Positions 6,745 through 25,069 of a stretch of DNA of 64,000 nt are shown here, piece by piece. The stretch covers positions 8,432,001 through 8,496,000 of the forward strand of contig OU015566.1 of NCBI GenBank assembly GCA_907165135.1. The letters are read 5' to 3'. The first letter of the stretch is position 1, and each line of letters begins with the position of its first letter. The translations under genes were made by a program, and so were the position numbers. Origin of the DNA: Oikopleura dioica (taxonomy: Eukaryota; Animalia; Chordata). The notes beneath the pieces are model-generated. The model worked only from the letters and a program-made list of their open reading frames with translations. It ran no database searches and was not told the origin of the DNA.

Positions 6745-6789
6745 AATCATAAAAGACGAAAAATCAATAGATGCAAATATAAGCGCAAG
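6745..6789 (-). repeat. Terminal repeat B2 (45 bp)
   Basis: Identical to 7207-7251 (aatcataaaagacg...ataagcgcaag). Confidence 0.9.
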
Positions 6790-6961
6790 CGTAACGTCTT
6801 CTATGATATGTACGGGTACCGTATGTGGCAGGAAGCAGACCTAACCACCGGTGAAAGAGATACTGGTTTGCAGGACCAGGGAGGTCGGACTGGAATCTGA
6901 CTCGGGGTCACCCCCATGACACACCCGGGACAGAACGCCCTGGGGGACGGAGGGAGGGGTC

Positions 6962-7206
6962 GCTAGAATAAAATAAAATTAAAAAGCTAAGCTACGGTGG
7001 TCGTATCGGATAAATCCGAGAAATCGGCCTCACCGAGCGTGCTTTTTACGCGAATGAGATTTTCGACTCGCGCCGCGCCCACGGGCACAACAATTCTAGA
7101 GACAAAACTGCAAAACATGGGTGTCGCGCACTAAGCGTCACCTTCCCAGGATCTCAACAACAACGAGGCTTGCAACATTTGGTCACCCAGATTTTTGGTC
7201 AGGTCT
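6962..7206 (-). repeat. Internal copy A2 of the 245-bp terminal repeat
   Basis: Identical by eye to 24825-25069. Confidence 0.97.
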
Positions 7207-7251
7207 AATCATAAAAGACGAAAAATCAATAGATGCAAATATAAGCGCAAG
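7207..7251 (-). repeat. Internal repeat B1 (45 bp), abutting A2 to form the predicted circle-junction sequence
   Basis: Identical to 6745-6789; directly contiguous with A2. Confidence 0.9.
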
Positions 7252-7861
7252 ACTTCACTACTTCTATCACTTATTGATACATCGTACTCAGTTGTCGGCC
7301 GGCCGGGAAAAGATGGAATGAAGTCGGAATTACCGGTATCCTTCCTTGTTTCCACGGGCGGACTTGGCACGGAGACTAGGCTCTACATGCTAGCAGCCCA
7401 ACTCTGAAGTTATCAGAGCGGGAGGGGATCTTTTCCATGCGCTGGTTTACACCAACTACGCTTTCGCTGGTTTACACTAGCATACATGAACAAGATATTC
7501 GAGTAGAGCTGCGCATTAACACGCGATCAAACCTAGATAAACCACCTCACTCATATAACCTGCTAGGTCAAAAAAAGAAAAAGGTCTGCTTGGTTATTTC
7601 GGCGATATACTGTACACGAATTGGGGCGTTTAAGCTTGCTGCAGATAAAAAGGATGAATCCTGCAAGGAGCATGCATAAAACAAAAGCTGGTCCCGTGTT
7701 AGCACACTGGCGGACCTGGTCAGTCAAATAGCAATACAAAAAGTATATTCTGAATAAAACTGGATGGCAGGACAGAGACAGCAAGGTTGCAGTCAGTCAT
7801 AGAAAAAGGAGCTGCGTCGGAAAGTTGGTTCATCCTCAGCACTTGACTCTAGCCGCTAGAC

Positions 7862-9889
7862 TCACTGAAAGAATGGAGTAAGGGGCATAGGGCTCGCTAG
7901 GCTTCTCAAGTACCTCGAAAAGGGATCGTCGTTGAGATAGGCCATCCGTCGTTTGATGAAGTCTGGTAAGACTCTTCGTTCGGAGTTAGTTGGAGTTGGC
8001 GACTCCATCGATTGTGAGGCAACTGAGGTTTCCCTCAGAGCGCGGCATTTAGCGCAACAGGTACACTGCTGGTTGCTTACTATTGAGACTTTGGCTGTCT
8101 CCATCGGCGAAGGTTTCCCTACCCGATTCGGCAATGAAGAGGGCGGTTGAGCCGTCTGAAGAGTTGTGAGCACCGTCGTATGGTCCTGGATAGAGACGGT
8201 TGATTGAAACTCTGTGGGAGGAGCCATATGATCTTGACTAGAGGATACTCCAGTCGGGTTAGCGCTCTCTACAGAGGAATTAGGACGGTTGGGGAGACCC
8301 TTCCTTTGCTTAGGTGCATTAGCTAGCGGGATACCCTGCTGCGCCACATGATTAGAGTGCAACTCTTTTACAGTTCTGGCGTACCAGTTAGCATCAGAGA
8401 GAACTCTTGATCCCACTTCGGGGGAAACAAAGTCAGTTTTCACTGCAGACAGAGCTGGAGGGGCAGTTCCCTGCGGGCCGTTGTACAGTGAGTCTACCAG
8501 AGCTTTAGCTACCAGCGCCGGGGCTCCGATTTCTGATTCTTCCATGTTTAGGGCTCTGTAACGATGGAACATCCTTGAGTCCGGGGCCCATCTGTACATA
8601 ATTTCCAGGTCTAGCTTGGGGATGCCCGCTGCAATGCCCATTGTGATAGCAGATGTTCTGCCTGAGTGTCCAGAGGGGACTCTGGCCCAGCCGAGTTCTT
8701 TCGAAGCCCGGCTGTAATGGTAGCACAAAATGCGACGGTTTCTGCAGTGGAGGAAGACTTTCCCTTCCTCCCTCGCACCCAGGATTTCGTATAACAGAGC
8801 CTTGAAGTTAATCGGGCAGTTGCTTGGGAAGAACATCGTCAGGCGTTCTGGGATGTTTTTGAAGACATTCGTCTTGCTTTCCCTAATCGGCATCACAATG
8901 GCGTTACCCTGGATTGACTCGTATAGATCTTCAATCCACAGCTTTCCCACCTCGATTGCTCGAGCGCCTGTGAAAAACGTGATTGCGCTATAAAGCGCCG
9001 CCTCTCTTCTGACAGGTTTCCCTGAGTTCAAGAGGTGGGCCCAGAGTGCTACCATGTCACTCAATCGAAATCTCTCCGCCTGGGAGGGCTCGTATAGCTT
9101 TTTGCTTGATAGAGTTTTCGCTCTCGCCTTGGCCCATTTCATGATGTCGTTTGAGCACGTCTTGGGCAACCGGGAGTCGCTTTCTCTTTCCAGAGCAGCT
9201 CTAATTACTAGGTACCAATGTAGGTATCTATTCGGTCTATTAGGCGGGCATACGTATTTGTCGATCCAAGCCAGAAAGGCTGTCGTAATTTCGTCAAAGG
9301 TTTTCCCTCTGTTGAGCTCCACCATGTTAGATGCTGCCACGCGTATATGGGCATCAGTCCACACTGATTCCGAGCACACGCTGTCATCGTCGTCGTCTAA
9401 GACCGGGTCTTCACCCAGTACTTCTTCAAACCAATCTTTTTCTTCCTCATTGGGCGTAGGTGCTCGCTTCGGTTTCTTTGAAGCGGGTTTCTTTCTTTTC
9501 TTCGATTTATCCGGCGCCGTGCACGTTTCCTTGGCTAAAGGAGCGCTGTTTTGTGTGGTGTCGGCCGACAATGACGCAGGCGAAGATGCTTCTCTCTTCT
9601 TCGGGTTGCCCCGTATTGGGAGGAGGCTCTCCAACGGTGGTTGCAGCGGAGGATCTTTACCGTCGATCCGGCGCGATCTTCTCTTTTCTTTCGGCTGAGG
9701 GGGCGGAGTAGTAATTGGCGAGGGCGAAGCTGGTCGCCGTTGAGGCAAGACGTCGCTACCCTTGGGTTCTCCCCATCCGTGGGTTTGCGTCGTTGCTCTA
9801 CCGCTCGTCTTGCGTGAGTTTAACTTCGAGCGAATCACTTTCTGAAACATATGAATTTGTGAGCAAAGCCATAGAATTTTGCAGGTCAT
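7862..9889 (-). CDS. Tyrosine recombinase (YR) of the retroelement; true start uncertain
   Basis: Catalytic set intact: FFTGARAIEV (R), RESKTN (K), GHSGRTSA (HxxR), YRWAPDSRMFHRY (W, Y); long low-complexity N- and C-terminal extensions. Confidence 0.92.
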   Translation of the reverse strand: MTCKILWLCSQIHMFQKVIRSKLNSRKTSGRATTQTHGWGEPKGSDVLPQRRPASPSPITTPPPQPKEKRRSRRIDGKDPPLQPPLESLLPIRGNPKKREASSPASLSADTTQNSAPLAKETCTAPDKSKKRKKPASKKPKRAPTPNEEEKDWFEEVLGEDPVLDDDDDSVCSESVWTDAHIRVAASNMVELNRGKTFDEITTAFLAWIDKYVCPPNRPNRYLHWYLVIRAALERESDSRLPKTCSNDIMKWAKARAKTLSSKKLYEPSQAERFRLSDMVALWAHLLNSGKPVRREAALYSAITFFTGARAIEVGKLWIEDLYESIQGNAIVMPIRESKTNVFKNIPERLTMFFPSNCPINFKALLYEILGAREEGKVFLHCRNRRILCYHYSRASKELGWARVPSGHSGRTSAITMGIAAGIPKLDLEIMYRWAPDSRMFHRYRALNMEESEIGAPALVAKALVDSLYNGPQGTAPPALSAVKTDFVSPEVGSRVLSDANWYARTVKELHSNHVAQQGIPLANAPKQRKGLPNRPNSSVESANPTGVSSSQDHMAPPTEFQSTVSIQDHTTVLTTLQTAQPPSSLPNRVGKPSPMETAKVSIVSNQQCTCCAKCRALRETSVASQSMESPTPTNSERRVLPDFIKRRMAYLNDDPFSRYLRSLASPMPLTPFFQ

Positions 9890-10115
9890 GTTTAAGATGA
9901 ACAGAAAGTTCCAGAATAATTATACTTTGAACAGGCGGAAGTTACAGAAAGATAAATGAATCCCTTCTCAACCGGCTGCCCGGTGAGCCCTGGGTATATT
10001 TCGGGTAATAATATTTACAAGTTTTCGATCATTGCTGATCCTATTCGAAAGTTACCTTTCGCTGGGGTGGTGGAATGAAGGTTTCCCTTCTTTCAATCAG
10101 AAACTAAGCGCTGAA

Positions 10116-11471
10116 TCAGGGCTCCTTTTTGGGTTCCTGTTTTGGAGGGCCTCTTGGCTCGTTTTGTTTCTGCTTTTTGAACTGGTTGTTCTGGTTTTGG
10201 TTATTGGCGTTTCCGCCCTGACCCTTGTTGTTAGGGTTGGGTCTTTTGTTGGGGTTTTGGTTCTGGTTTCCACCATTCTGGTTCCCCTTGTTGTTGTTGG
10301 AGTTTCCTCCACCTTGCTGGCCCTTTTTCTGCTGCGATCTCCCGCCTCTATTACGCTGGTTGCCATTTTGCGTGGCCTTCTTCAACTCGGCCTCGTTGTT
10401 GGCTTGGGTTTTCTTGTAGTTAATGAGCCAGCGCTTTTCCTCCGCTGTCGCCTTGTTGAATCTGAGGCGCTCAGTAACTGACTTGACCCGCTTCTGATCA
10501 GCATGGGTGTGAGTGCGGTATTCTTCGTCTTCACGAAGTACAGAGTCGAGGGGCAGTTGGAACTTCCTGAGGTTGTTCTCATTGTCGGCGAGTTGGTGGA
10601 AGTTTTTATCGAACTCGTCTTGGCATTCCTGTGTAAACAGGGAATAACAGAGTCTGGAGAAATCCAGTCTAGAGAGCGTTTCATCGTTCAGCTTCTCTTG
10701 AATCTTCATAATGATGAGGCGGTCGTCAACCAATTCCAGTGGGGTGACTCGAAGGAGCTCGCTTATGATCGGCGCCACGTCGTTCTTATCCAAGTTGACC
10801 AAGGCTTTCACCGAGGCGAACTTCTGGTAGAATTCCTGGCCCACTTCTTCCAGGTTGCGGTGGACTGTCATCTTCAAACCGGTCGTCCTTCTTTGGATGA
10901 GGTAGTATGTGTCGCCTTCACGACACGCCGTTTTGATTTTAAGGCGTTCCGCCTTCTCCTGGACTTCTTTATCGAGGGCTTTAACCCGATCTTCCAGGGA
11001 CAATTTGACTGCTTCGTAGCTGTCACTTTCGGTTTTGGTGGTTTGCACCTCCTTGTTGATCTTTTCTTTCGAGTGGGAGTTGAGGAATCTCTCCTCATCG
11101 ATGCCGGCTTGGCCTTTTGGGGTCGCCCCCGTCTCTTTATTCATTAGAGCCGTGTTGTAAAGAAGCTGGAGGGTCCGAGCTTCCTGTGCTTTAAGCTTTA
11201 GATGGTCTAGGATAGGAACCATTTGTTTCAGCTCGTTTTGAGTCCTCTTCCTCTCCTTGAGCAAGGGACCAAGTATGGGGTGACCCAAATTCTCCGCTAT
11301 AACACGTAATGCCGTGCGCTTGTCCACCGCTTGTTTGCTCGAAGACAAATCGAACTTCTCTCTGATGGCTGCGAAAGAAGTGTCTTTTCCTTTCTCCTTC
11401 TTTCTTAGCGCGACGGGGGCCATGACGGTTAGGTTAGAATCCAAATCGTTGTCTACATCAAGGGAACTCAT
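10116..11471 (-). CDS. Element ORF5, 451 aa orphan: helical/coiled-coil body with a basic N/Q/G-rich tail (possible Gag analogue)
   Basis: First ATG at 11471 directly follows ctaac...cccttcgtttttAG|t; tail NGNQRNRGGRSQQKKGQQGGGNSNNNKG... Confidence 0.75.
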   Translation of the reverse strand: MSSLDVDNDLDSNLTVMAPVALRKKEKGKDTSFAAIREKFDLSSSKQAVDKRTALRVIAENLGHPILGPLLKERKRTQNELKQMVPILDHLKLKAQEARTLQLLYNTALMNKETGATPKGQAGIDEERFLNSHSKEKINKEVQTTKTESDSYEAVKLSLEDRVKALDKEVQEKAERLKIKTACREGDTYYLIQRRTTGLKMTVHRNLEEVGQEFYQKFASVKALVNLDKNDVAPIISELLRVTPLELVDDRLIIMKIQEKLNDETLSRLDFSRLCYSLFTQECQDEFDKNFHQLADNENNLRKFQLPLDSVLREDEEYRTHTHADQKRVKSVTERLRFNKATAEEKRWLINYKKTQANNEAELKKATQNGNQRNRGGRSQQKKGQQGGGNSNNNKGNQNGGNQNQNPNKRPNPNNKGQGGNANNQNQNNQFKKQKQNEPRGPPKQEPKKEP

Positions 11472-11632
11472 ACTAAAAACGAAGGGAGTTAGAAGCGTGG
11501 CAACACAAAGTCTGTCGGTGTAATTAAGAAATTCTGCGCCGCAGACGAACGAATGAAGTACAGAAAGTAAGGCATAAAGCAGAGGAGAGTTTTTTGCCGA
11601 CGGCTTCATCTTCTCTGACAGCGTTAGCTGAC

Positions 11633-14145
11633 TCAATCGTCTCTTCTTCTGCGTTGCTGAGTTACCTCAGCCTCGTGGATGATGGCCCAAGCAGATGCTT
11701 CTTCCTTCAGCGGCCTGAAATAACCCAGGTCTTCTGATTTCTTTGGCGACGGGGATATTACCGGTACCGCCGCTTTGATTTTCATCACTTTCATTTTCTT
11801 TCTTCGGGCTAATGCTAAGGCTAAGGGTTCCCTTTCGTAGCAAAGCACGATGAGCATCCAAGAGTTTCCTCTTGCATAATCCTCCAGGTACCTGAAGACT
11901 AGCGTTGCCAGTTTCCTTGGCGGGAAAGCGTAGATGACTTCTTTCGCTCTCCATCTGGTAAAACGAAAAAAGTCGCGGGCAACTGCTTGGTCATCGGAGT
12001 ATCTCGAGATATACCTCTCGGCTCTAGCATTCTCTTTCGTTGCGAACGCATCGATAGTGGGAGTTTCCCCCCAGTAGGAACAGCATTCTTTAAACGCCTC
12101 GTCGGTGATCTCGCTCTCGTTAAAGTCGAAGGTTCTGGACGGTTCATCCGCTAGTTGTTCTTTGGTGTTGACGTAATCGACTCGTACGTCGATGTTCCAC
12201 TCATCGGCCACCTCATAGATCCGGTGGATCAAGCTGTTGAGTCTCCCCACTCTGGATCCATGGTAGAGGGCACTGCAGACCACTTGGTTGTCGCATTTGA
12301 TGAGAATTCTCCTATCTTTTAGGCGGCTGCCCTTTCTCTTGAGCATAATGTAAATGGCGTAAGCCTCTTTCATAAAGATATCTTCCGACTCGAAACCCTT
12401 CGGCCAGTAGAATGGTTCTTTTTCTCCCAAGTTCTCGATACATAGGCCGCCCGCTCCTCCAGACGCGTCGGTGTAAACCAATAGGCGGTTTTTAAGGTCC
12501 TCTTCTCTGAATATTTCTTTCTTGAGGTGGACCACACCGGTCTCGAGCCATCTCGCTTTCCTTGGGGTTGACCCCACCGCTATCCATTTGTACAGCTCTG
12601 AGTATAGATCTGCGCAGACCGGGATGATTGGGTTGCCTGTTTCCAGGGCCTTTTTGATGAGTTCGTTTTGCACTCGAATGAAAAGACGCATGCGTCTCTC
12701 CACATACATGAAATGCACACATTTGCCCCTAATTCTCTCGAGCGACTTGAGGTGGGTGTGTCTGCTATTAAGGATCGCTCCTACTTCGGATCTGAACTTT
12801 TCCCACTTCCCTTGCGGGATCGATATGGATTGCTCCGTAGTATTAATGATAAAGCCTAAGAATTCGATCTCATGTGACGGTGTGAACGTCGATTTTCTCT
12901 ATGTAAAAATGTGCCCAACGCGCAAGCGAGGGCGCAAATCGCGAACGCCGTTCTAGGCGCCATTTTTCCCGAGACGATGGCTTCGCGCTCTTGCTCGGAG
13001 TCTGGTCTTTCAATTATAAGACGGTCATCCAAGTATAACAGGATTAAATGGCCCTTTTTCCGCAAGAAGTTTATCGGGGAACCGTTAATGAGCTGGTATT
13101 CACTCGGAATCCGGGGGATGCCGAATGCTGCTGCCCTGTATGTGAAGCGTTGGCCGCCCCATTGCATAGTGGCCATTCTGCTTGACATTGGATCGAGCAA
13201 GAGGTGGTGAAAGGCCGATTTATCATCTAGCTTTAGTAGAAGGTCACCCTTTCTTACTGTAGCCATGACTTCTCTAATGTCATCGAGAACGCATTTCACG
13301 CTTTTGATTTCCATTAGTGTTAGGGGTGACCCATCGTAGCAAACTCGCCAACCCGCTCCTTTAGGGACCAGAATAATTGCGGAGGTCAGGAGGGGGTCTA
13401 TAGAACAAGGTTCGAGGGGTGACAAAGCTCCCGTCGAGCACCATTTCTTCAGTGTTTCCACAATATCTGGGTGGAACGCGGAAACATTGCCCGAGTTTTT
13501 GATTTTAAGCGGGCACCTGTGCCTTTTGCCACCGATGTGAACCGGTGCCTTCACCATTCTATGGGCCGGCCAATCTTCAGAATCATATTTGTCTGAGTCT
13601 TGCATGGCTCCCAGCTCCCTTCTGCTCAGGTTTCCCTTGATGAAAATCGTGGAGTGGGATTCATGAATGGTGTGAACCATCGCAAAGTGCGTATTAGATC
13701 TGAATTTGCGGGGCTCCGAGGGGTGAATCATTTTGAAGTTTTCAAATACATCCACCCCTTTTTGCAGGATAGCGTAAGCTCTCGATCTATCCGGAGGGTC
13801 CAACTCTTTGATTACTATCAACCAGAGCTGCAGGAAGTCCTTAAAACTCCCCGCGTAAAAGTCCTTCTCTTCTCGGAAGAAGATGTCGTCCCATTTCGGT
13901 TGGAACGACGAGTCTGTGGCTTTGAGAGACAGGTCGAACATGCGCTGAGCCTCAATTAGCCAGGATGACCAGCAGAGCGGAGGGTTAACTCCCTCCCCGA
14001 ATGGTTTCCCATTCCATGATACAGCCCTGACGTCTGGTGGGGGCCAAGGAAGATATAGGTCTTCCCAAGACATGAGTTTACCGAATTCTGCGGCATCGAG
14101 CCTTTCTTTCATATCTCTTGCAATAGAGTGCCGATTCCAATCCAT
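11633..14145 (-). CDS. Reverse transcriptase - RNase H - DNA adenine methyltransferase-like polyprotein; one frameshift in the A4 run at 12893-12896
   Basis: RT KLDDKSAFHH, AAFG, YLDD; in the next frame KSTFTPSHEIEFLGF; RNase H YTDAS, MKEAYAI, KCDNQVV, QLADEPSR; MT TIDAFAT and YAFPP motifs typical of DIRS/PAT elements. Confidence 0.92.
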
Positions 14146-14293
14146 TCTAAGCAGAAAATTGGGTGGTTTTTGCTCCCACAGGCAGGAAACTTTATTTAGT
14201 TGGAAGGACAGTGTTCCAAAGTACAGATAAAGGTCTCAAAAATTGAGTGTACAGGTTAAATGATCGCAGCGTAAACCACGAAGAGGGTAACTA

Positions 14294-15538
14294 TTAGATG
14301 TAATCTTCCATAGAATCCTCGTCGAAGTCCAGGCTTTTCTCCGTCCAGGTTGTTCCCGTGACCTTCTCAGCCCGTCTGAGCATCGCTCTTCGTAACTCTT
14401 GGATTTCTTTCGCCGAGGAGTCCTCCTCCTCCGAGATCATTGGTAGATTTTCTTTTTCTACCGGTTGAATTTCTTCAACGGTCACAGGGTTACCCCCGGT
14501 TTTCATGAGGACGAAAGAGCGCTGGTCGATAAAGCTCAGGCCCCAGGCCTCGTATTTCTCCGATGATGGCATGAATTCGCACTTTCTTGGGAACAAGAAG
14601 TCTCTTAAGGTTTTCACCTGATCGTCCACTGGAGTGTCCCTGATTTCTCTGGGAGAGTCGGCTGCGCTGAGCCATCCCTGTAGGTGCGCTATCATCGTGA
14701 ATTCGTTTCCGAAAATTTGCGTTAGCAAAAATTTTAGCCTTTTAACTGATCTCACCAGCGACACTGGGTCAACTTCGGACGAAACTGCCAGACTCGCCAA
14801 GATCTCCGACCAAACTAGGCGATGAGCTTCCGCAGCGTGTGACGCAAAGATTTCTCTTAGTGGAATTATCGAGTGGTTTTCACCACCCGCGTTAGCAATT
14901 CTTTCGAGAAGGGCTAGCCCTTCCCGGATTTCTTTGACTATTTGGTCTTCCGGTGTGAACCGGAACTCCAGGATTTCCAGTGGAGTCTTTTTATGCTTAT
15001 AAAAGTCAGTTGACTGACTAATGTAGCGATAGACAAGCCCCGCTTCTTTCGAGATTGCGTTGCTAATGGCTTCGGCTAACCTGACTTGAGTTCTTGCCAC
15101 TAAGTCAATTGAAAGGTTTTCACCATTCACGCAGCACTGCATTTTCTGGATGAGTTCATACAGTTTCGCCACATTTTGGGCTGCCGAGACTCCTGCGTGC
15201 GGCTTTAAGGGCTGATGCACTAGGAAGGAGTTCAGTACCTTTAAAGCACCTTGGTACTTTCTTCTATAGTCCGTTTCCGAACTTTCGTCGAGGGGAACCT
15301 CGGTTTTAGTGCCTTCTTCCGATGCCGGCTCACTCGTGGGAGCCCTATTCTCCTCCGAGAATGGTTCCACCTGAGAGGCCTTGGAAGATAAGACGATCGG
15401 GGTAATAGAAGTTTCCCCGTTGAGTTCTTCCTCCAGCGGGAGGTCCTTCTTCTTTTTCAGAGCCGGGCCTGAATCCTCTGTGAGACTAGTGAGGCCGCTC
15501 ATGCCGGTCTCCAGGACTTTCTTGTTGCGCCGAGACAT
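14294..15538 (-). CDS. Element ORF4, 414 aa orphan with NLS-like KKKK, in the position where gag normally lies
   Basis: Long ORF whose ATG follows cccttgtttAG|aca; no CCHC knuckle seen. Confidence 0.75.
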   Translation of the reverse strand: MSRRNKKVLETGMSGLTSLTEDSGPALKKKKDLPLEEELNGETSITPIVLSSKASQVEPFSEENRAPTSEPASEEGTKTEVPLDESSETDYRRKYQGALKVLNSFLVHQPLKPHAGVSAAQNVAKLYELIQKMQCCVNGENLSIDLVARTQVRLAEAISNAISKEAGLVYRYISQSTDFYKHKKTPLEILEFRFTPEDQIVKEIREGLALLERIANAGGENHSIIPLREIFASHAAEAHRLVWSEILASLAVSSEVDPVSLVRSVKRLKFLLTQIFGNEFTMIAHLQGWLSAADSPREIRDTPVDDQVKTLRDFLFPRKCEFMPSSEKYEAWGLSFIDQRSFVLMKTGGNPVTVEEIQPVEKENLPMISEEEDSSAKEIQELRRAMLRRAEKVTGTTWTEKSLDFDEDSMEDYI

Positions 15539-15992
15539 TGTCTAAACAAGGGAATTTGAAGTTTCCGTAAGTTAATAAAATCCTGTTTAGAACAGTTAAA
15601 CTGGCTGAACCGGACACAGTGAAACAGAAAAAACGTGTGACAGTCAAAAGGGCATTAGATACCGGGGAAACCCGTGACTTTTAACTAAACCTAAATAAAA
15701 CTAGAGCTACCATAAGTTCCTTGGATAGCGGCGGAGCCGGGGAGTCCTGGAAAACCACATTGCTGTGATTTACCGCGTGGACCGCCCATTACACACCGTG
15801 ACCAACGAAGCTGTAAATTTTTAACTAAAACTACCACTACTGATGGGTTGCCCCCAGACGTTACTCTAATGCTACGAGGGACCGCGATATGAGTGCCCTT
15901 GAATAGTTGACAGAACTCAATCTGTTTTCCTTGCTCCGCTGGAATTTTCATTCGCGCTTAGTTTTTACAGGGAGACTTGTTGAAAAAGGAAC

Positions 15993-16958
15993 TTATTTCT
16001 TTGCTCCTCCCGTTTCGTTGTTGGGCCTCAGGCCTCCTGTGAGAACGAAGTCGTGGAGACGGGTGACTTGGTGCTCCAAGTTCGCGCTGATGTTAATTAA
16101 TGGTGCCTCTGGGGTCGGTGAGGGGCCTGGATACTGATTGATTGCTCGATCTCTGGTTTTCACCATATCCACCGCCGTGTTCAACACGTATTTTATTTCC
16201 CTTATTGGAACTTTACCGTCAGAGTAGGCGTCGTAGTAGCTAAAGAGCCAGATCAGGTTTCTGATCAGCGCCGCTGCGGTCGTCTGTTTCGGATCGTTGT
16301 AGGGTAACCTAGGCATGCGAACAGCAAAGGGTGGGCGATCTTCCTCTTCATCTCCTTCAAAATGGCAAGTTTCGATCGTCGAAATCTTGTTCAGGTCCGG
16401 CGGAGGTAGATCGAAAAGATGATCGTAGATTGAAGAGTAGTCGGGCATGGCCAGCTTCGCTCTTTTCTTTGCTGGGGAGTTGATTTCGTTGTCCTCCTTG
16501 TTTGCATCAGGGTCACCTGACTGAGGGGACGCCGGATTGCTTTCTAAGTCCGCTTCTTGTACATGTCTAATGGACTCGACTGAAGGAGTCTCGAAGCTTG
16601 AGGCGGAAGCCTGCGACAGATCTCTCTGCTCGCCCTTCTCTACGAAGACGATGTCCAAGGTACTGAACAGATGTGATTTACCACAAAACACACATAGGAA
16701 ATCAATTGGCCAGTCTGTCACTTTTTCCTTGTCCTTTTGGGTTTCCCCATTTACCTCTAGAGCCTCAGATTCTTTGGCTAACCAGCCTATACCACCGAGT
16801 TTGTTTGGGTTGGAGACAAGGCATTTCAAGCACATCTGGTGCGAGCATTTCTTCAGGATAACTTCGCGCCTCACTGCTAGATCGAACTTGAAGCCACAAT
16901 GCAAGCAACCTTGAATGCGAGTAGTGTTCGTAATGGGATCCTTTTCTGCTCTATTCAT
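15993..16958 (-). CDS. Element ORF3, 321 aa C3HC4 RING-finger protein
   Basis: CLHC-x16-CSH-x2-CLKC-long loop-CVFC; followed by an acidic/proline-rich region and a helical C-terminal segment. Confidence 0.8.
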   Translation of the reverse strand: MNRAEKDPITNTTRIQGCLHCGFKFDLAVRREVILKKCSHQMCLKCLVSNPNKLGGIGWLAKESEALEVNGETQKDKEKVTDWPIDFLCVFCGKSHLFSTLDIVFVEKGEQRDLSQASASSFETPSVESIRHVQEADLESNPASPQSGDPDANKEDNEINSPAKKRAKLAMPDYSSIYDHLFDLPPPDLNKISTIETCHFEGDEEEDRPPFAVRMPRLPYNDPKQTTAAALIRNLIWLFSYYDAYSDGKVPIREIKYVLNTAVDMVKTRDRAINQYPGPSPTPEAPLINISANLEHQVTRLHDFVLTGGLRPNNETGGAKK

Positions 16959-17692
16959 GCGACCGAATCAATTCTCTGAAAAAATAGAGAATGATTATCT
17001 ATTCCTGCTTCTACTATTTCCTGCAGCTGGGTGCCCGGCTGAAAAAACAGAAGAGACTGATAAAAGGGTGACCTTTTATCGCAAGGGTATTGTGGCTTGT
17101 CTTTTATTTTGAAACTTGACAAGAATGTGGTGAGGAGAGGGGTAGCAGTATCAGCGCAAATTGAACGAGAGATGAGGGAAAAGCGGTGGGAAAGCGGCAT
17201 AAATAAGGCGAAAAAAGGCACATAAGCAAAAAAGGCACACAGGGGAATATATTTTCAGTGGAAGAAAGAAGGACTCGGTTGAACCGTAGCGGAAGTATCC
17301 ATGAGTAGAGGAGCTGGCAGCATCCGGAAAAGAGCGAGTAAGGGTCACCCCTTAGAATTTTTTGGCGAGAACAGGACGAACGGCAGTGAGTGCGTTGTGA
17401 GACCTAAATACGCTCGTTAACAAACTGTTTCGCTCTCACGAAGCTGTAATTTACCTGTGAGAAAAAGTGAAGAGGCTCGCCAGGGCGTGTCGACGTGATG
17501 CTGGCTCGGTGGAGGCGAAGGTGATATGTACAGCTAAATTGAAGGCCACGATGGTCTTGGCGGAGATGTAGAGCAAGAGGCAACTCTTGGTGAAGGTGAT
17601 GAGGAGTGGAGGGTGCGCTAGCAAACCATATTAGTTAAAGTATGGATCGAAGAACTATCTCTCACCTGACTTCTGCTTTTTGGGCGCTGTTT

Positions 17693-20428
17693 TCACAGGA
17701 AGTAGTCGCCCTCAAACGAGGTACCAAGCGAAGGGACCTCGTTTCCGGTTAAGGGGTTACCCTTAATTTTCTTTGCCGAGACGAAGGCCCACGCCAAAAT
17801 GCGCTCGTTTGCACGATGCGCAAGGCGTCTAACAGCTGGGCCTCCCATGAGAAAAGCTTCATTTGCGCAAAAGCACATCAGCTCTCCCAATGGGAACTTC
17901 GATGGGGAGGCCAGCTGGACGAACTCGTCGAGGATCTCCGTCGCGATGTCGAGTCTGGCGTCTTCGACGAGGACGAGCTGCTTGCACGCGAGCTTGAATC
18001 TGTCGGGGTCACCCGATCTGACGAGGAAGGCGTCGAGGTCCAATTCCAGCTTGGCTGGGTGCGAGATCTTGGTTACACCCAGCGTGACGAGGTCTCGTTC
18101 GAAGGTTGCCCTTCGTTTCATCAGGTCGGTGATTTTGTCCCTGATAATCACGGAATCCGCGATAAAGTTGGGGCTTGGCCTCCTGAGGCCGCGAGCGGAG
18201 ACATTAAAATGGCACGGGCTGATGTTCCAGAAGTAGCCCTTTCTTGCGCGCTCTTCTTCCGTGAGCTCCGGCTCGTAGTCGTAGGGGATGTCTTCGTTCA
18301 GATTTTCATCTGGAACGATTTCCGCCTCTTTTGGAACTCTGGGCTCGCCCCATCTTCTCGGCTCGTTCTCCCCCACCGGCTGAGTCAAGTCGATCGTCGG
18401 TCGCCCGGCTGTTGTACCACTCACACCGGTCACCACTCGAGTCGGCGCTTGCTGGATCGGTGAAACAATCATCGGCGCTGCGCTTTGCTGTGGTCGAAGC
18501 GGCGATTCTGGTCTGTGTGGAAGTGGCTCTTGGAAACGGCGGTTGCCCGCGCGTTGATCTCTCATTGCCATTGAGTAGGTGGGGAGAGAGTCCGTCGACG
18601 GTCGTCGAGCGTGCATGTATCTCGGGCGGGCTCGTTGCGGCTGCTGCTGGCGTTGTTGCTGCTGCTGCTGTTGTTGTTGATGCTGCGAAGAGGGGGGTGC
18701 GTTCGAAGCTGCTGTTAGTTCCGCCATTCGTTTTGAGTAGGCCTTCTGAACTTCGTCAAGCTCGTTGACGAAAACATCGAACTTCGGAGAACGACTGGGG
18801 TAACCCATATCTTCTTCCCGAAGGTTGACCAGCTTCATAAAGGCACTCTTGATGTCCTCTCGCAAGCGCGCTGGTGGGTTTATGGGGGAAACCCCAAAGT
18901 AGATCGACTCGCCGATTTTGATCATCTGTTTCGTCGGGAAATAGCGGCCGAAACCTTTTCTTTTCGCGTAAGCGCCCATTTGGTCGAGGTCTTTCGCCAG
19001 CCGGTTTGCCGGATTCGTGCAGCTTTCACTGCGCTCGCCTTCGCCAAAACGATGAAGCCAGTAATGCGCTTTCAGTCTACGCTGATGCCAAGCCAGGTCC
19101 GGGTCGTATCTTTCTCCAGCCTGACCTTGTGACCTCTGATTCTGTCGGTTTCCCGCATTTTCTCTTCGGTTTCCCGAGCTTCGCTGACGGTTAGTCGTTT
19201 CTCTCCAGCCGGAAGACTCTGGTTGTCGGCTCGAAGAGTTCCACCCAACGTGCTCTGGTCTGTTAATCACCCATCCTTCGCCTGATTGTTGCGACGGTTG
19301 AGTCGATGGCGGTGAGGCGTTGCTGGCCACTGCTGGGGCGCTGTTGGCGGGTTCAACCGTGTTGTCCGCGACGGTGGCGTTGTTGGAGTCGGGTCGCTCG
19401 ACGGGCCTGGAGTTTCCTCCTTTCTGCTTCTTGCGACCGCTGGATTCCTCGTCCGAAGCTCGCTTTCGGTTTCCCGCTTCGATTTTTCTATTCTCACGGT
19501 TGTCGGAGCAATCCGAGTCATCGGAGTCGGTATCTGTGTACGGTCTTCCATCTGGGCGCGCTGGACGTCTGGTGGCGAGTTGCTTTCGTGGTCGAACCTT
19601 TTTTCCGTCTTTGTTGGTGACCCAGCAGGGACGTTCTTTGCTGACGAAGCCGCAAGATCTCGACTGAAGACCCGAAGGACCAGGTTTGTCGTGATCAGAA
19701 TCCTCCGTCGAAGTTTCCTTCGGTAAAGGGTTCGCCGTTGGTGGCTTCGGAGGCGATTTCTTCTTCGAAGAAGATGCGGTTTCCCGCGCTGTCGGCTTCT
19801 TTGGCTCATTCAGCAGTTCTTCTTCGTCTAAGCTCATGTGGGAGTCGTTGTTCTCCGGTCGATCTGAAGCTGACGAAGAAGGGACGTCCATGACGAGAGG
19901 CCCTGACGGTCCTAAAATCAGGATTAGGAAGGTGAAATTCTCAAATGCCAAGTAAAACTTGTACATGAGAGCGTGGCAAAAAAGCAGAAGTAGCGCAAAC
20001 CACTCTGTTAGTGCTGACCGATCTATCGTTCTCTCGATTCGGGTAACCCCGTTTTCTGAGAAGACTAGACTAAATTGAGCGTAAACTCGGATTGCCAGGA
20101 GGGTCTTATCTGCCCAAAGACGAGTCAAGAGTCTCAGTCTTCGGAGTCTCCAGATGATGTAAAAGAGTGGGTTCGTCACCTCGTCCGTTAACTTACCCAG
20201 TAAGTCGTCTTCGATTTCTCCGGCGTGGACGTCGATGGAGTCCGCTGCGGTCGATGTATCCATTGGAACGGGGTTTCCCCCATTTCCAACTTCAACTGCT
20301 TCGTTACGGTTGTGCTCGTTGAAGCCGGGGAGAAGGACGTCTTCTCCGATGAGTTCTTCAAGGTCATCCATGGGAGTGTCGATTATTTCGACGTTGGGGC
20401 TCCCCGATCTCTCCTCGTTTTCCGACAT
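17693..20428 (-). CDS. Element ORF2, 911 aa unspliced or 816 aa spliced; largely disordered with polyQ and two folded-looking segments
   Basis: Long ORF; in-frame GT-AG intron 20196-19912; ATG follows ttgttattttAG by 18 nt. Confidence 0.8.
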   Translation of the reverse strand: MSENEERSGSPNVEIIDTPMDDLEELIGEDVLLPGFNEHNRNEAVEVGNGGNPVPMDTSTAADSIDVHAGEIEDDLLGKLTDEVTNPLFYIIWRLRRLRLLTRLWADKTLLAIRVYAQFSLVFSENGVTRIERTIDRSALTEWFALLLLFCHALMYKFYLAFENFTFLILILGPSGPLVMDVPSSSASDRPENNDSHMSLDEEELLNEPKKPTARETASSSKKKSPPKPPTANPLPKETSTEDSDHDKPGPSGLQSRSCGFVSKERPCWVTNKDGKKVRPRKQLATRRPARPDGRPYTDTDSDDSDCSDNRENRKIEAGNRKRASDEESSGRKKQKGGNSRPVERPDSNNATVADNTVEPANSAPAVASNASPPSTQPSQQSGEGWVINRPEHVGWNSSSRQPESSGWRETTNRQRSSGNRRENAGNRQNQRSQGQAGERYDPDLAWHQRRLKAHYWLHRFGEGERSESCTNPANRLAKDLDQMGAYAKRKGFGRYFPTKQMIKIGESIYFGVSPINPPARLREDIKSAFMKLVNLREEDMGYPSRSPKFDVFVNELDEVQKAYSKRMAELTAASNAPPSSQHQQQQQQQQQRQQQPQRARPRYMHARRPSTDSLPTYSMAMRDQRAGNRRFQEPLPHRPESPLRPQQSAAPMIVSPIQQAPTRVVTGVSGTTAGRPTIDLTQPVGENEPRRWGEPRVPKEAEIVPDENLNEDIPYDYEPELTEEERARKGYFWNISPCHFNVSARGLRRPSPNFIADSVIIRDKITDLMKRRATFERDLVTLGVTKISHPAKLELDLDAFLVRSGDPDRFKLACKQLVLVEDARLDIATEILDEFVQLASPSKFPLGELMCFCANEAFLMGGPAVRRLAHRANERILAWAFVSAKKIKGNPLTGNEVPSLGTSFEGDYFL

Positions 20429-20532
20429 TTTGTCGCCGATTTCAAACTAAAATAACAAACGCTTAAAAAAGAGCGAACTTGAGAGCTTCCTCTCTTGCTC
20501 TGAATGCTGAAATTGATTAATTTATGTCCATT

Positions 20533-20643
20533 TTACATATAAATGAAGGAAACGAGCATGTGGAAGAAAACACAGGTGACAGTAAGTGTTGCCAGTACGG
20601 AAAAGATGAACAGAATAAGGTAGATGTACGCGTAAGCGTTCAT
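20533..20643 (-). CDS. Putative 36-aa hydrophobic peptide of the element
   Basis: MNAYAYIYLILFIFSVLATLTVTCVFFHMLVSFIYM; preceded by pyrimidine-rich cttccttctgctaAG|gggcaacccttaaaaATG. Confidence 0.4.
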   Translation of the reverse strand: MNAYAYIYLILFIFSVLATLTVTCVFFHMLVSFIYM

Positions 20644-20898
20644 TTTTAAGGGTTGCCCCTTAGCAGAAGGAAGTTGAGAAACAGGAAGGAACAGGTGGAA
20701 ATGTTGGGTAGAAACAAAACACACAGAAAATTACTAAGAAATTTTAGTCTGGAGAGGCGTATTTCACGCTTACTCTTCTTCTATATGGCGTCTGACTACG
20801 ATACCCAGCTAACCGGGGGCCGAAACGATTAATAAGACACTCCTTCACCGGAGATTTCTCTGAAAAAACGCGTTAAACTGGCCCTGGTGCACCCTCTG

Positions 20899-21122
20899 AC
20901 TTACCTCGGTGGTTGAAAGGAGGTTGGCGGTGGAGTTTTCTCTCGCAGATTTTCGTTGCGCAAGCAACTTTTCCTTCTCTATTTTGTTTCTTTTTCTCTG
21001 GCGAAATTTTTTCTCATTTCTATGGTGGCAGTGAGTCGAGCAGCGTCGCGAATGCTTCTTCAGGATTGGCCCGCACGTGGCACGTGCCGCCCCCGCGGTG
21101 ACTCAATCCTGTGATTACGTAA
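20899..21122 (-). promoter_or_regulatory. Second internal promoter-like cluster with a leader exon ending in a canonical splice donor
   Basis: TTACGTAA 21115-21122, TGACTCA 21099-21105, GC box, two CACGTG (21074, 21081), CCAAT (minus) 21065-21069; donor GAG|GTAAGT at 20905/20904. Confidence 0.55.
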
Positions 21123-21265
21123 CTCATGCTCGATTTCTCGAGCAGGTGGTTTTCTTCCTTGATTTCTCAACGGACAAGCAGTAATTAATAAATATTAGGG
21201 TCAACCCTAAATGTAATGACGAGTTTTAAATAAATGGGTTACCCCAATTCAAGATGCTTTCATTT

Positions 21266-24256
21266 CTATCTGATGAAATTGGTCTTGTGTCCCGTGTTAA
21301 AGGGTTGAGTTCGGTCTTTTGTCGGGCGATAACCCAGTCCCGAAACTGACACCAAGTCCAGCCATGTTGGCGGGGCCAGCGAAGCTGTCAAGCATGCCAA
21401 TCTAGCCAAAACTCCTCGACCAAAGCCTAAGCTGCACTGCTTGAAATCGCTCCTGTCGAACTTCTCGCACAGTGACGCCTCTCGAAGCTTCTCCGACTGC
21501 CGGATGTGTCTGTTAGAAAGGTGGCCCTTTCCCCACGAGACTAAGTCCCGTAGAATCTTCACTTTGCCTGGGGCGACCAGCTGATGGTAGTTCCAGACAA
21601 TTGCTCTATAGCCGCTTTCGGTTTCCCGAAAGTTTAACCTTTGCCAGCGGAATAGGCCGCGATTTTGGTCTTCTTCGACCAAAAGAAGAAGGACGGGGCA
21701 GTATTTGTTTAGCCCTTTCAGCTCTTCGAATTCTAGGGAGCCGAAGTTCTCTTCCCAGAGTGCTGATGGAGTCTCCTCCTTCAATTGAGGGTTAGTGACG
21801 AGGTCTAGCCATTTTTGTTGCGCTTCCATCGATGTGGCAATCAACACGAGGGGGTGACCCTTTGGTCTCGCCTTTGCGATCAATTTCACTAGAATCGCCG
21901 CTTCTGCTGGTTTGAATTCGCTTAGATCGTTAAGTAGCGATGTAGCTTTCTCGATCGACATGTAGGAGCCTTTCTTATTGTAAGGATGGTCTTTCTCCCA
22001 TAGAAACGACTCCTTTGCTGCGTCCGCATCGTTTCCAATCCACTGGAATAAGAGCTTCGATTTCTTCGCCGAGGGTACTCGGTGCATGAAAAGAAAACCG
22101 AATTTCTTCGGATCTAAATCATTTGGCTGCTGTACTGCTTTTAGCTCGTATGATTTGGCCATTCGTTCCAGATTTCTCCAGATCTCTCGGGGCTTCTCGC
22201 CGGTTTCACTGCATGCGACGAAAAGGTTATCCGCGACTATTTCGATCGTTTCCTTCAGTGAGCCCTCGGCCGGTTGTTTTGCCGTTTGCGCGGCATATTC
22301 TATCACCGCATGAAGTGGGTCTGAGATCGGCGCGTCGGGTCTTTTGTTGCAAGCTTTCACTGCAAAGTGTCCCACCGCCGCCGATTTGACTAGTCGGGTA
22401 GCTCTGGCTTTCCAGGCTCTGCTTCCTTCTGCTTCGACCTCCCAGAAATCTCTTGGGATTTGCCAAGCCAGGTCCGAGTCTGTGTTTCCGAGCGCGAACT
22501 CGCTGATCAGCGGGAACCACGGGTCCGGGATAAGCTGGAGCTTCGAGTGGTCCTTGCTCATGTTTTTCCTAGTTGCCTGTTCGTAGGAGAAGCGAGCTAT
22601 CTCGATCTGGTTGCCCGGAATCGAAGTACGAATGGTGTCCCAATCTCCGCTCATCAGAGGATTTCTTTCCCAAAAGGTCTCCCTTTGGCTGAGGATAGTC
22701 TCTTCCGCAGATTGGTAGATGGAATCGAACCAATCCTTGATCGCAACAGCTGTGAGTTTCACCTTCTTGAATCCCTCCAGCACTTCCTTGAACAGCGACA
22801 GGACTGGATCAGCCAGATCTTGCGTCGTCAGAGAGTAGTGGAATTCGAACGGTTTCCCGGACGTGTTCGTTTGTTTCTCCATTTTTGCCTGTCTCCAGTC
22901 CCTTGATCTGAACATCAGCTTTTCGCACAGGACTTTTTCGTTATTCCTGGTTTTCACCACTTTCTCCGCTAGCTTCGTGGCCAGCTGAGCTCTGAGCTTC
23001 ATCCTCCAGAAAGGGTGGCAAGCTGCCCCGAAGGGGATCAGACGGTAGTCTGTGGGCTCTAGGTATTTGTTGAGCCTGTCGAGACCGCAGGCGACTGCGT
23101 TGTTGAGAATTAACCTCATTTTGACTCCTTCGAAGTTCTCGTCGGCGTCTTTGGTCGGAAAGATCAGGTTCGCTCTGATTTCTTTCGCTTTTTCGAAGTC
23201 TTCTTTGTCTACCCATCTTTCCGTAGCCGCGGCGTTGGCTGCGATTGCTTCTACAAAGCCAATCGGGTCCTTTGATGAGTTTGGGACTGTATCGGTGATC
23301 GCCAAGATGTCAATTGCCGCGTAACCGACTAATCTCTCGAACCACCAATTCGGGTCTGGGCGCAATGTTCGCCTTTGCATGGCATCCGGAGTTGCCTCCA
23401 GGACTTTGCAGGTGACGTAAGTCCAGTAAGAGTCAGTTAGGATGGAGGTCATCAACATCTTGTGGATTGACCAACGTGGACCGAGTCTTGACCTGGGCAA
23501 CCAGGAGAACCAAGCTTCCATGAAAGCCTCTTGCTTTACGCCTAAGCCGTTTGAAGCTCCTCTAACTCGCTTGATGAATGACGGCTTCTTGCCCTTCACT
23601 GGCTCGGATGTGTATTTGATTCTGATGATCGACTCAGGGTCTTCTTTCAGGCAAGCGAACAGCTGGCAGTTTGAGAACTTCCTGCGGATGTTTTCTGCGG
23701 CATAGATCAGCTCCAAGTCTGACAAAGTTGTCCTCGCGTCTGGCCCTAGCTCAAATTGAACCAGATTCGATAGAGCTGTGCGCAGCTGCCTCGCTGAGGC
23801 ATCTTTCTTGATGAAAATCAAGAAGGGATTAAGTTCTGTCAGGGTATCCCCTGTTTCTGAGCTTTCCGATTTCACCCCATCATTATTCTGAGGCACCTTT
23901 GGCTCGAGGCTAACCAAGTTGAATTCTGATGCAAGCGCATACAGAAGACCTGGATCTCTCACTGGTTTAAAACCCCAGAAAGCGTTGACTTCCTCGATTA
24001 GATGGTCAGTGTTAACTACCACGAAAGCGGAAAGTGAAATAGGGATTACTCCCAAATTAGAGAGTAGGCCCACGTTGGATGCTGCCCAAGCCGCGGCTCT
24101 TGAGAAACCGGGGTCAGCATATGGGTCAAGTTGGCCTCTTGGTAACTGTATTTTATGGGTTTCCCCATTACGATTTACCGAGTCCCAGTTTCCTGGGTGC
24201 GGATCCGAAAACCCGTCCTGATAAATGTCCCTCAGTGACTCGGGGATGTCATACAT
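21266..24256 (-). CDS. Element ORF1, about 996 aa orphan from the first ATG
   Basis: Uninterrupted 3-kb ORF inside the element; no motif recognised. Confidence 0.85.
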   Translation of the reverse strand: MYDIPESLRDIYQDGFSDPHPGNWDSVNRNGETHKIQLPRGQLDPYADPGFSRAAAWAASNVGLLSNLGVIPISLSAFVVVNTDHLIEEVNAFWGFKPVRDPGLLYALASEFNLVSLEPKVPQNNDGVKSESSETGDTLTELNPFLIFIKKDASARQLRTALSNLVQFELGPDARTTLSDLELIYAAENIRRKFSNCQLFACLKEDPESIIRIKYTSEPVKGKKPSFIKRVRGASNGLGVKQEAFMEAWFSWLPRSRLGPRWSIHKMLMTSILTDSYWTYVTCKVLEATPDAMQRRTLRPDPNWWFERLVGYAAIDILAITDTVPNSSKDPIGFVEAIAANAAATERWVDKEDFEKAKEIRANLIFPTKDADENFEGVKMRLILNNAVACGLDRLNKYLEPTDYRLIPFGAACHPFWRMKLRAQLATKLAEKVVKTRNNEKVLCEKLMFRSRDWRQAKMEKQTNTSGKPFEFHYSLTTQDLADPVLSLFKEVLEGFKKVKLTAVAIKDWFDSIYQSAEETILSQRETFWERNPLMSGDWDTIRTSIPGNQIEIARFSYEQATRKNMSKDHSKLQLIPDPWFPLISEFALGNTDSDLAWQIPRDFWEVEAEGSRAWKARATRLVKSAAVGHFAVKACNKRPDAPISDPLHAVIEYAAQTAKQPAEGSLKETIEIVADNLFVACSETGEKPREIWRNLERMAKSYELKAVQQPNDLDPKKFGFLFMHRVPSAKKSKLLFQWIGNDADAAKESFLWEKDHPYNKKGSYMSIEKATSLLNDLSEFKPAEAAILVKLIAKARPKGHPLVLIATSMEAQQKWLDLVTNPQLKEETPSALWEENFGSLEFEELKGLNKYCPVLLLLVEEDQNRGLFRWQRLNFRETESGYRAIVWNYHQLVAPGKVKILRDLVSWGKGHLSNRHIRQSEKLREASLCEKFDRSDFKQCSLGFGRGVLARLACLTASLAPPTWLDLVSVSGLGYRPTKDRTQPFNTGHKTNFIR

Positions 24257-24300
24257 TGCAGCTGTCGAGCTTTCTCTTTTCAATATTTTTTAAATCTCTA

Positions 24301-24435
24301 TTTTTATAGAAAAAAGGGAACAATTATCTCAGCCGAAAGAGTTAGAGAGATTCTGACGCTTTGAATTTACGTCAAGCTCAGCGCGGCTCCTGCGCCGCTA
24401 ATGATTGGCGGCGGATGATCCCCTCAGGGCACGTG
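24301..24435 (-). promoter_or_regulatory. TATA-type promoter-like region for ORF1
   Basis: Minus strand: CACGTG 24430-24435, CCAAT 24404-24408, TGACGT 24369-24374, TATAAAAA 24301-24308, about 45 nt before the ATG at 24256. Confidence 0.55.
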
Positions 24436-24824
24436 TGCGTAGGCGGCGCGCGGCCGTCTCAATCTCGGTAGAAATGGATCACGAGAAGCTCGCTGTAGAG
24501 CTAAACAGGGTGCTCCGGGTGAAAACTCGTGAAACAAATCACCATTTATCGGGGAGACCCGATTATGGGAAAAATTTTCTCTGCGAAACGAAGTTGCGAG
24601 AGGAAATGCGTGAGCATCCCCAAATACGGCTCAGTACACCGGTAAACCGGGACGGAAAGCCTTTCTCAGCGAAAGCCGGAGCTTGCGAGAGGACCCAGAC
24701 CATTTAGGATTTACAGAGCCCCTGAAAAAAACATCTGGAGACTAAGGTCAGCCAGATGCAGAAAAAACCTCTCCAGACTGAACCTGAAGGGTTGATCGCG
24801 ACTAGTCTCCTTACTGAGTAAAGA

Positions 24825-25069
24825 GCTAGAATAAAATAAAATTAAAAAGCTAAGCTACGGTGGTCGTATCGGATAAATCCGAGAAATCGGCCTCACCGAG
24901 CGTGCTTTTTACGCGAATGAGATTTTCGACTCGCGCCGCGCCCACGGGCACAACAATTCTAGAGACAAAACTGCAAAACATGGGTGTCGCGCACTAAGCG
25001 TCACCTTCCCAGGATCTCAACAACAACGAGGCTTGCAACATTTGGTCACCCAGATTTTTGGTCAGGTCT
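24825..25069 (-). repeat. 5' terminal repeat A1 (245 bp)
   Basis: Identical to 6962-7206; contains the perfect hairpin tcgga-taaa-tccga within a longer stem. Confidence 0.97.

Follow-up and report, generated by a model that had tools for sequence, protein, structure and literature searches.

An 18.3-kb tyrosine-recombinase retrotransposon of Oikopleura dioica that probably carries its own long 5′ genes

Tyrosine-recombinase (YR) retrotransposons are usually described as small three-gene elements. A locus on chromosome 1 (chr1) of Oikopleura dioica, Okinawa strain OKI2018_I69, raises the question of whether a single element of this class can extend over 18.3 kb and carry several further genes. 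The stretch of DNA that we analyzed, referred to below as the window, is 64,000 nucleotides (nt) long (contig OU015566.1, positions 8,432,001 to 8,496,000), and the element lies on its minus strand at 6744-25069. Eight long frames follow one another head to tail there, all on the minus strand, at a GC content of 0.47 to 0.55 versus about 0.40 in the flanks. NCBI and UniRef hold the open reading frames (ORFs) as separate unnamed genes; an earlier note on this DNA had read them as one YR retrotransposon with identical split repeats and five accessory ORFs. Our data argue for the second interpretation in its main point: with a probability of roughly 85%, the locus would be one giant YR retrotransposon of the PAT-like type, with 5′ genes that form an integral part of it and are under selection.

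Split direct repeats flank the element in the order A1...B1-A2-spacer-B2. The parts are the following:

24825-25069, minus strand: A1, split direct repeat at the 5′ end, 245 nt, 100% identical (245/245) to A2; position and sequence start are the same in a second copy of the element (C1 copy, see below); presumed promoter and leader
7206-7251, minus strand: B1 core, 46 nt, abutting A2 at the internal B|A junction, 46/46 identical to B2
6962-7206, minus strand: A2, 245 nt, from the repeat comparison
6805-6961, minus strand: A2-B2 spacer, 157 nt, starting with a C/T-rich tract when read in the element orientation
6744-6789, minus strand: B2 core, 46 nt, identical to B1, the element's 3′ terminus

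A first repeat comparison had given the B repeats as 7198-7251 and 6736-6789, with 94% identity over 54 nt; the diverged C1 element has this 46-nt core, 46/46 identical, at both of its B positions. A spacer of 157 to 178 nt was found in both copies of the window family and in other families. No inverted repeats of at least 40 nt were present in 5000-27000, and no target-site duplication (TSD) was detected in the flanks of the window copy or of two elements of another O. dioica family, d2 and d5. The recent insertion proposed in the earlier note fits the identity of the repeats: under the PAT/Ngaro model (PMC6681497), identical A1 and A2 repeats point to a recent insertion of what appears to be a near-intact element.

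The C/T-rich tract GACCCCTCCCTCCGTCCCCCAG (window 6805-6830) has counterparts directly after A2 in all families looked at, including d2 and d3, and a conserved 13-nt sequence, TCTTTACTCAGTA, follows A1 in both copies of the window family; both might serve in priming or processing. At the 3′ flank, the first 8 nt (in element orientation, CATCGGAC) show a partial likeness to GACCTGAC, with which A starts (window 6736-6744 versus 7198-7206); this may reflect microhomology between target and circle junction, or chance. Isolated fragments of the A repeat occur at C3:1305705-1305912 (93% identical) and C1:5901712-5901862 (84-95% identical). They come without a B repeat, a spacer, or ORFs and were rejected as solo A-spacer-B remnants.

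Between the repeats, all ORFs listed in the earlier note were found again on the minus strand. From 5′ to 3′ they are:

21266-24256, minus strand: ORF1, 996 amino acids (aa) from the ATG, family-specific cargo
17693-20428, minus strand: ORF2, 911 aa, annotated as OKI2018_I69.chr1.g2255
15993-16958, minus strand: RING-like ORF, 321 aa, with the pattern C-x2-C...C-x-H-x2-C-x2-C...C-x2-C and a conserved C-terminal domain
14294-15538, minus strand: ORF4, 414 aa, directly upstream of the reverse transcriptase, with homologues in the same position elsewhere
12856-14145, minus strand: reverse transcriptase (RT) ORF, 429 aa, with a YLDD box; Pfam RVT_1 at an E value of 2.4e-6 and 27.9 bits, just under the cut-off of 29.6
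12893-12896, minus strand: break of the pol frame at an A-run between RT and RNase H; the two frames overlap in 12859-12898
11633-12898, minus strand: RNase H ORF with a putative methyltransferase (MT) domain (RNaseH-MT or RH-MT), 421 aa (open frame, stop to stop), with D-E-D-D, DAFA..N, and FPP motifs
10116-11609, minus strand: ORF5, 497 aa from the first ATG, between MT and YR, with a coiled coil and a basic G/N/Q-rich tail
7862-9889, minus strand: YR, 675 aa, with YR motifs and a profile match to Cre

The 451 aa given earlier for ORF5 correspond to a later ATG; the ORF itself was confirmed. RT and RNaseH-MT, listed together earlier, do not form a single open frame.

If ORF1, ORF2, and the RING-like ORF are parts of the element, they should move with it. 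Indeed, a whole-genome search (64.3 Mb, 19 contigs) returned a second full copy of 18,154 bp on another chromosome, C1:13315766-13333919. The repeats at the ends of this C1 copy likewise follow the order A1...B1-A2-spacer-B2 (identity of 99.6% for A and 100% for B), and the copy contains homologues of every ORF of the window in unchanged order. Protein identities between the two copies and the proportions of nonsynonymous differences (pN) were as follows:

ORF1: 60% identity, pN 0.25
ORF2: 43-50% identity, pN 0.35
RING-like ORF: 33% identity, pN 0.43
ORF4: 68% identity, pN 0.21
RT: 70-85% identity, pN 0.15
RH-MT: 81% identity, pN 0.13
ORF5: 60% identity, pN 0.25
YR: 63% identity, pN 0.23

Synonymous sites between the two copies are saturated, with proportions of synonymous differences (pS) of 0.78 to 0.85 (0.78 for ORF1 and 0.79 for the RING-like ORF). 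Since pN was only 0.13 to 0.43 against this saturated pS, purifying selection has acted on all ORFs, the cargo included. ORF1 (pN of 0.25) is as constrained as the recombinase (0.23). Despite the saturation of silent sites, a run of about 100 nt at the B|A junction is nearly identical in the window and C1 copies and identifies the junction as acting in cis. Over roughly the last 560 nt of the 3′ end, the identity is 85-90% (85-100% with the B|A junction). The conservation of the junction and the 3′ end points to cis-acting constraint.

Two runs of 500 N, about 20 kb apart (C1:13315266-13315765 and 13335809-13336308), enclose the C1 copy, and its A1 starts at the first gap. According to the genome paper, gaps of 500 bp mark skipped regions (PMC8008620). 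The 5′ flank of the C1 copy falls into the first gap, and the location may be hard to assemble and possibly close to a centromere.

The association of ORF1 with the core was also seen outside O. dioica. A metagenome scaffold of 12.8 kb from another organism, L024, encodes an RT that is 56% identical to that of the window, and a homologue of the C-terminal part of ORF1 (35-38%) lies 5′ of an ORF4-like gene and this RT, on the same strand. On this scaffold, positions 510-7297 contain a perfect tandem duplication of 3,394 bp that includes the 3′ end of ORF1 and is either an assembly artefact or genuine; the RH-MT, ORF5, and YR N-terminal regions are deleted. A DNA run with a different organism label, X5, contained relatives that are 90-95% identical across ORF2 and the RING-like ORF; the single-base insertions and deletions listed were in spacers only, and one of 3 nt was inside the RING-like ORF. 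Since these relatives were present at high contig depth, the window family is active now or was so recently. In DNA of a second individual (X2), the element was almost unchanged.

We searched the genome for a copy with these A and B repeats but without the three genes ORF1, ORF2, and RING inside them and found none: the C1 copy has them all. A relative at C3:672351 onward starts at residue 246 of ORF4 and is devoid of these three genes, and the abrupt start inside ORF4 identifies it as a 5′ truncation. Another piece of the window family, at C3:1998029-2000414 on a 2.9-Mb contig (Y-specific region by its annotation name), is a rearranged fragment with an inverted duplication of 895 bp, 99.6% identical, over the 5′ part of YR. 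The conclusion of the earlier note that the extra ORFs belong to the element thus stands, on the collinearity of the C1 copy and the linkage in L024.

What are the products of the 5′ genes? A TATAAA sequence precedes the start codon of ORF1 by about 50 nt. The only two ORF1 loci in the genome are inside the element copies, and an exhaustive HMMER search among 1.84 billion representatives returned only 13 relatives, all unnamed and on contigs too short for gene context. ORF1 had no match in Pfam, ESM Atlas, or BFVD, and its AlphaFold2 (AF2) model was poor (confidence score, pLDDT, of 48.5). A ubiquitin-like or PB1 fold was considered for residues 105-220 and discarded, as the Z scores of up to 6.2 were at noise level. 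ORF2 consists of an acidic N terminus, a hydrophobic segment, a long disordered middle part, and a conserved C-terminal domain. It is likewise confined to the two element copies within the genome; no homologues were found elsewhere, a search with the C-terminal domain returned only its own annotation, and ESM Atlas gave no usable match. One part of ORF2 may be optional:

19912-20196, minus strand: in-frame, stop-free ORF2 segment of 285 nt with the ends GTAAGT...TTTTAG

This segment is removed in the public gene model; the C1 copy keeps it as hydrophobic protein sequence. If its splicing is optional, which is possible, ORF2 would have two isoforms.

The RING-like ORF, also restricted to the two element copies within the genome, matched RING and FYVE domains of Pfam below threshold (E values of 0.03 to 0.06). 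All eight zinc ligands expected of a C3HC4 pattern are kept in the C1 copy despite only 33% identity; ligands 6 and 7 are separated by 31 to 42 residues, an unusually long loop. The protein is a candidate ubiquitin ligase that would act on host or element proteins. The genome has no further locus for any of these three genes, so none of them is a copy of a recognizable host gene. Searches of all ORFs of the element against Pfam, PHROGs, and NCBIfam yielded nothing beyond the weak RT match.

The other two proteins that had been called accessory are of a different kind. Homologues of ORF4 are located directly 5′ of RT in the O. dioica families d1, d2, and d3 and in the metagenome contigs L024 and L025, and they share a conserved C-terminal motif. 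The AF2 model of ORF4 is all-alpha, with an overall pLDDT of 61 and a helical core at residues 120-320 with pLDDT values of 70 to 92; fold searches returned generic helical bundles only and no retroviral capsid. Other O. dioica families have a homologue of ORF5 between MT and YR (hhalign probability of 95%, E value of 2e-8, 172 columns), and a search of ESM Atlas gave no usable match for it. Because they are conserved across the O. dioica DIRS families, ORF4 and ORF5 are core proteins of this clade. The number of accessory ORFs is reduced from five to three: ORF1, ORF2, and the RING-like ORF alone are family-specific cargo, 9.3 kb in total.

The enzymatic core was identified by a combination of motifs and profiles. 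The RT is 56-85% identical to relatives that carry PF00078; its relatives in databases are all unnamed metagenome proteins. The D-E-D-D residues of RNase H are invariant in an alignment of six family members (A4), and Pfam matches to RT_RNaseH were weak. Downstream of RNase H, the block DAFA..N ... FPP is conserved in the same alignment. At the homologous position, PF05869 (Dam) was found in six of eight family members including the closest, just below threshold (E values of 4e-6 to 0.04), and it is precomputed for the relative P0033; the window protein itself had no Pfam match for MT, and the RH-MT profile had no match in PDB. In an alignment of six sequences (A2), the YR residues R, K, H-x-x-R, W, and Y do not vary across families. 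The profile made from A2 matched Cre recombinase at R173, H289-x-x-R292, W315, and Y324 with a best E value of 0.006, and 17 of the 19 matches listed were Cre or its derivative Tre. Searches of Pfam, PDB, and NCBIfam with the single YR sequence returned nothing.

Since its repeats are direct and split, its genes all point the same way, a putative MT-like domain is present, and a TSD is absent, the element appears to be PAT-like in structure and a member of the order DIRS. Elements of the PAT-like group are roughly 5-7 kb long, and an additional ORF occurs in some elements of the Ngaro group. PAT of Panagrellus, kangaroo, TOC3, and SpPAT have the same A1...B1-A2-B2 repeats without a TSD and the same co-oriented order of an ORF in the gag position, RT-RNaseH-MT, and then YR, and for them, too, identical repeats are taken to mean that an insertion is recent (PMC3266345, PMC6681497). 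The window element differs from them in its length of 18.3 kb, about threefold that of described members of the class, its three extra 5′ genes (9.3 kb), the presence of ORF5 between MT and YR, and the 157-nt spacer between A2 and B2. DIRS1-like elements such as Dictyostelium DIRS-1 and DrDIRS1 share the RT-RH-MT and YR domain set but carry inverted terminal repeats together with an internal complementary region, whereas the window element is devoid of inverted repeats and has direct repeats at its ends. Those described by the time of one survey were all smaller than 6 kb (PMC3266345). Ngaro and VIPER have split direct repeats and YR as well. They lack the MT-like domain by which DIRS1-like and PAT elements are distinguished (PMC3266345), whereas the window family has a Dam-like region.

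DIRS-like elements had already been reported from O. dioica, as stated in the earlier note: the survey lists four DIRS1-like sequences in two families (PMC3266345), and O. dioica DIRS elements were reported by Volff in 2004, as cited in PMC3266345 and in the part of PMC5240408 available to us. Because the survey covered only 5 kb on each side of an RT hit (PMC3266345), it was blind to the 5′ module. The genome paper of OKI2018_I69 does not describe DIRS giants, and 44% of the repeats predicted there have no assigned class (PMC8008620). Giant retroelements of other classes, such as the rotifer Terminons, plant Ogre, and planarian Burro, resemble the window element in their extra ORFs of mostly unknown function, but they are Penelope-like or long terminal repeat (LTR) elements, and a review of giant transposons does not mention DIRS, Ngaro, or any other YR retrotransposon (PMC6431247). 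On present evidence, from a comparison that did not include Repbase, Dfam, or a larvacean transposable element library, the giant size and the cargo appear to be new for the class.

Is the window family an isolated case? A search of the genome with the RH-MT protein returned about 20 further distant loci with 31-38% identity. Five of these were examined, and four had clear split direct repeats of the same type:

d1, C4 near 2.81 Mb: about 15.3 kb, large 5′ ORF of 1,438 aa
d2, C1 near 13.15 Mb: 14.6 kb, large 5′ ORF of 1,004 aa
d5, C4 near 3.35 Mb: 14.5 kb, large 5′ ORF of 1,016 aa
d3, C5 near 14.56 Mb: 15.6 kb, large 5′ ORF of 1,756 aa

In these four copies, which represent three families, RT starts 8-9 kb after A1. 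Their large 5′ ORFs (lengths are of the open frame, stop to stop) contained no Pfam domains and showed no similarity to ORF1 or ORF2 of the window in HMM, BLAST, and hhalign comparisons. The 5′ ORFs of d1 and d3 are weakly alike (E value of 3e-7), the sole such pair. The elements d2 and d5 are 98-100% identical along their length and occupy different loci with different flanks, so elements of about 14.5 kb do transpose. Gigantism together with a family-specific 5′ module is a property of the O. dioica DIRS clade, and the single giant lineage proposed earlier has to be given up in favor of several distant giant families of 14.5 to 18.3 kb. A 12.2-kb JGI contig of the d-type relative P0019 has an ORF of 1,173 aa about 1.6 kb after YR on the same strand, as would be expected from a tandem or circular assembly if the giant 5′ ORF followed the B|A junction.

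How well does a single giant element account for these data in comparison with other explanations? An ordinary DIRS element of 8-9 kb, reaching from ORF4 to YR, could be the neighbor of unrelated host genes or of nested insertions, and the A fragment farther upstream would then be there by chance. The public annotation treats the ORFs as separate unnamed genes, the relative on C3 begins inside ORF4 and does not contain the three 5′ genes, and isolated A fragments do exist elsewhere in the genome. However, the C1 copy repeats the order from A1 through ORF1, ORF2, RING, and ORF4 to B2 at the same length, the C3 relative breaks off as expected for a 5′ truncation, and other families hold a long 5′ module inside their own repeats. 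Nested insertion or chance juxtaposition of the three genes was rejected on the collinearity of the C1 copy, the selection on the ORFs, the confinement of the cargo to the two copies, and the linkage of ORF1 to an ORF4-like gene and RT in another organism. The composite explanation is largely refuted and, in our estimate, extremely improbable. It is also very unlikely that the locus is an endogenous virus or a DIRS-derived infectious agent whose cargo would be virion or entry proteins, by analogy to the env-bearing Tor elements of O. dioica. The ORFs are large, conserved, and of unknown function, the hydrophobic segment of ORF2 is membrane-like and kept in the C1 copy, and LTR elements of O. 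dioica are reported to carry env (PMC5240408); but no viral domain or fold (capsid, envelope, or protease) was found in Pfam, PHROGs, ESM Atlas, BFVD, or PDB, which is weak evidence given the low-confidence models, and by eye ORF1 and ORF2 have no N-terminal signal peptide. The virus-like cargo of the earlier note was not borne out, as the searches found no viral or other known domain or fold in ORF1, ORF2, ORF4, or ORF5.

That the element and its cargo are a dead relic, whose frames are still open only because it is young, is unlikely. This explanation draws on the break in the pol frame, on the presence of a single good copy of the window family, and on two oligo-dT RNA runs that gave no reads over 15401-21400, a result rated as no test. 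It is at odds with the identical A repeats and B cores, with seven long ORFs that are open over 18 kb, with the strong purifying selection between the copies, with the near-identical DNA in X2, and with the close relatives at high contig depth in X5. Nevertheless, several findings weigh against a functional single element as we propose it. The pol frame is interrupted once in the window copy: RT and RNaseH-MT are in different frames, whereas C1, C3, and other relatives are continuous there (three relatives read through). The catalytic motifs, described earlier as intact, are so at the level of motifs, and the window copy may be non-autonomous unless the break is an assembly error. The OKI2018_I69 assembly is Nanopore based and Illumina polished (PMC8008620), and the break is either a genuine change or a Nanopore homopolymer error, the two being indistinguishable here. 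The genome contains two full copies of the window family, and the C1 copy is degraded by frameshifts. YR, RNase H, and MT were recognized by motifs and by sub-threshold or profile matches and not by hits above curated thresholds, ORF4 would be Gag-like by position and conservation only, and the PAT-like placement was made from structural features. Finally, look-ups of the exact proteins returned no transcript contigs.

If the locus is one giant element, seven or eight ORFs have to be expressed from it. O. dioica makes wide use of spliced leader (SL) trans-splicing. Strong acceptor-like sites, a pyrimidine run followed by AG, are located 1-18 nt upstream of the ATGs of ORF2, the RING-like ORF, ORF4, and RT, at about 20446, 16975, 15541, and 14146, respectively; such a site within 20 nt was found for four of seven ORF starts versus 5.8% of all ATGs of the element (P = 3e-4). 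Starts of the type TTTAG-ATG also occur in the families d1 and d3. A possible 5′ splice donor follows A1:

24809-24814, minus strand: GTAAGG, possible 5′ splice donor 10 nt after A1, from the sequence only; the C1 copy has GTACGG there

The poly(A) signals AATAAA and ATTAAA are scarcer on the sense strand (4 sense versus 13 antisense). These features fit subgenomic mRNAs that would be made by leader splicing or SL trans-splicing.

We propose a replication cycle that is based on the PAT/Ngaro insertion model (PMC6681497) and on work on DIRS-1 (PMC7192593). A full-length RNA would extend from A1 to B2 and be reverse transcribed, its ends would be joined with the internal B1|A2 junction as a guide, and the recombinase would insert the product without a target duplication. 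ORF2, the RING-like ORF, ORF4, and RT would most likely be translated from RNAs processed at the acceptor-like sites upstream, either by cis-splicing from the leader or through trans-splicing of the SL. For ORF1, a separate TATA promoter is possible. The element would consist of two modules, a 3′ core common to all O. dioica DIRS families (ORF4, RT-RNaseH-MT, ORF5, and YR; about 9 kb with the repeats) and 9.3 kb of 5′ cargo that travels along and is maintained by selection.

Regardless of how its genes are expressed, the element shows that YR retrotransposons can carry large cargo. Those of the O. dioica YR complement that we examined are 14.5 to 18.3 kb long each, and half of each is conserved coding sequence that databases leave unexplained; the ORFs of the window element are annotated publicly as ordinary host genes. 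Among them are orphan proteins under selection that can now be studied, such as ORF1 with its marine metagenome relatives and the RING-like protein, and the element is a tractable case for the question of how seven or eight genes of one retroelement are expressed in a host with operons and trans-splicing. O. dioica has the most compact genome of any free-living animal. As a tentative and rather doubtful extension, its DIRS/PAT elements might form a clade of multigene "retro-operons," in which each family would have recruited its own giant 5′ gene set, without detectable similarity to the sets of other families or to known proteins, transcribed into one RNA of element length, resolved at splice acceptors by SL trans-splicing or leader splicing, and encoding factors that manipulate the host, such as a RING ligase. 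If this were true, it would be a route to gigantism enabled by the operon and trans-splicing biology of O. dioica.

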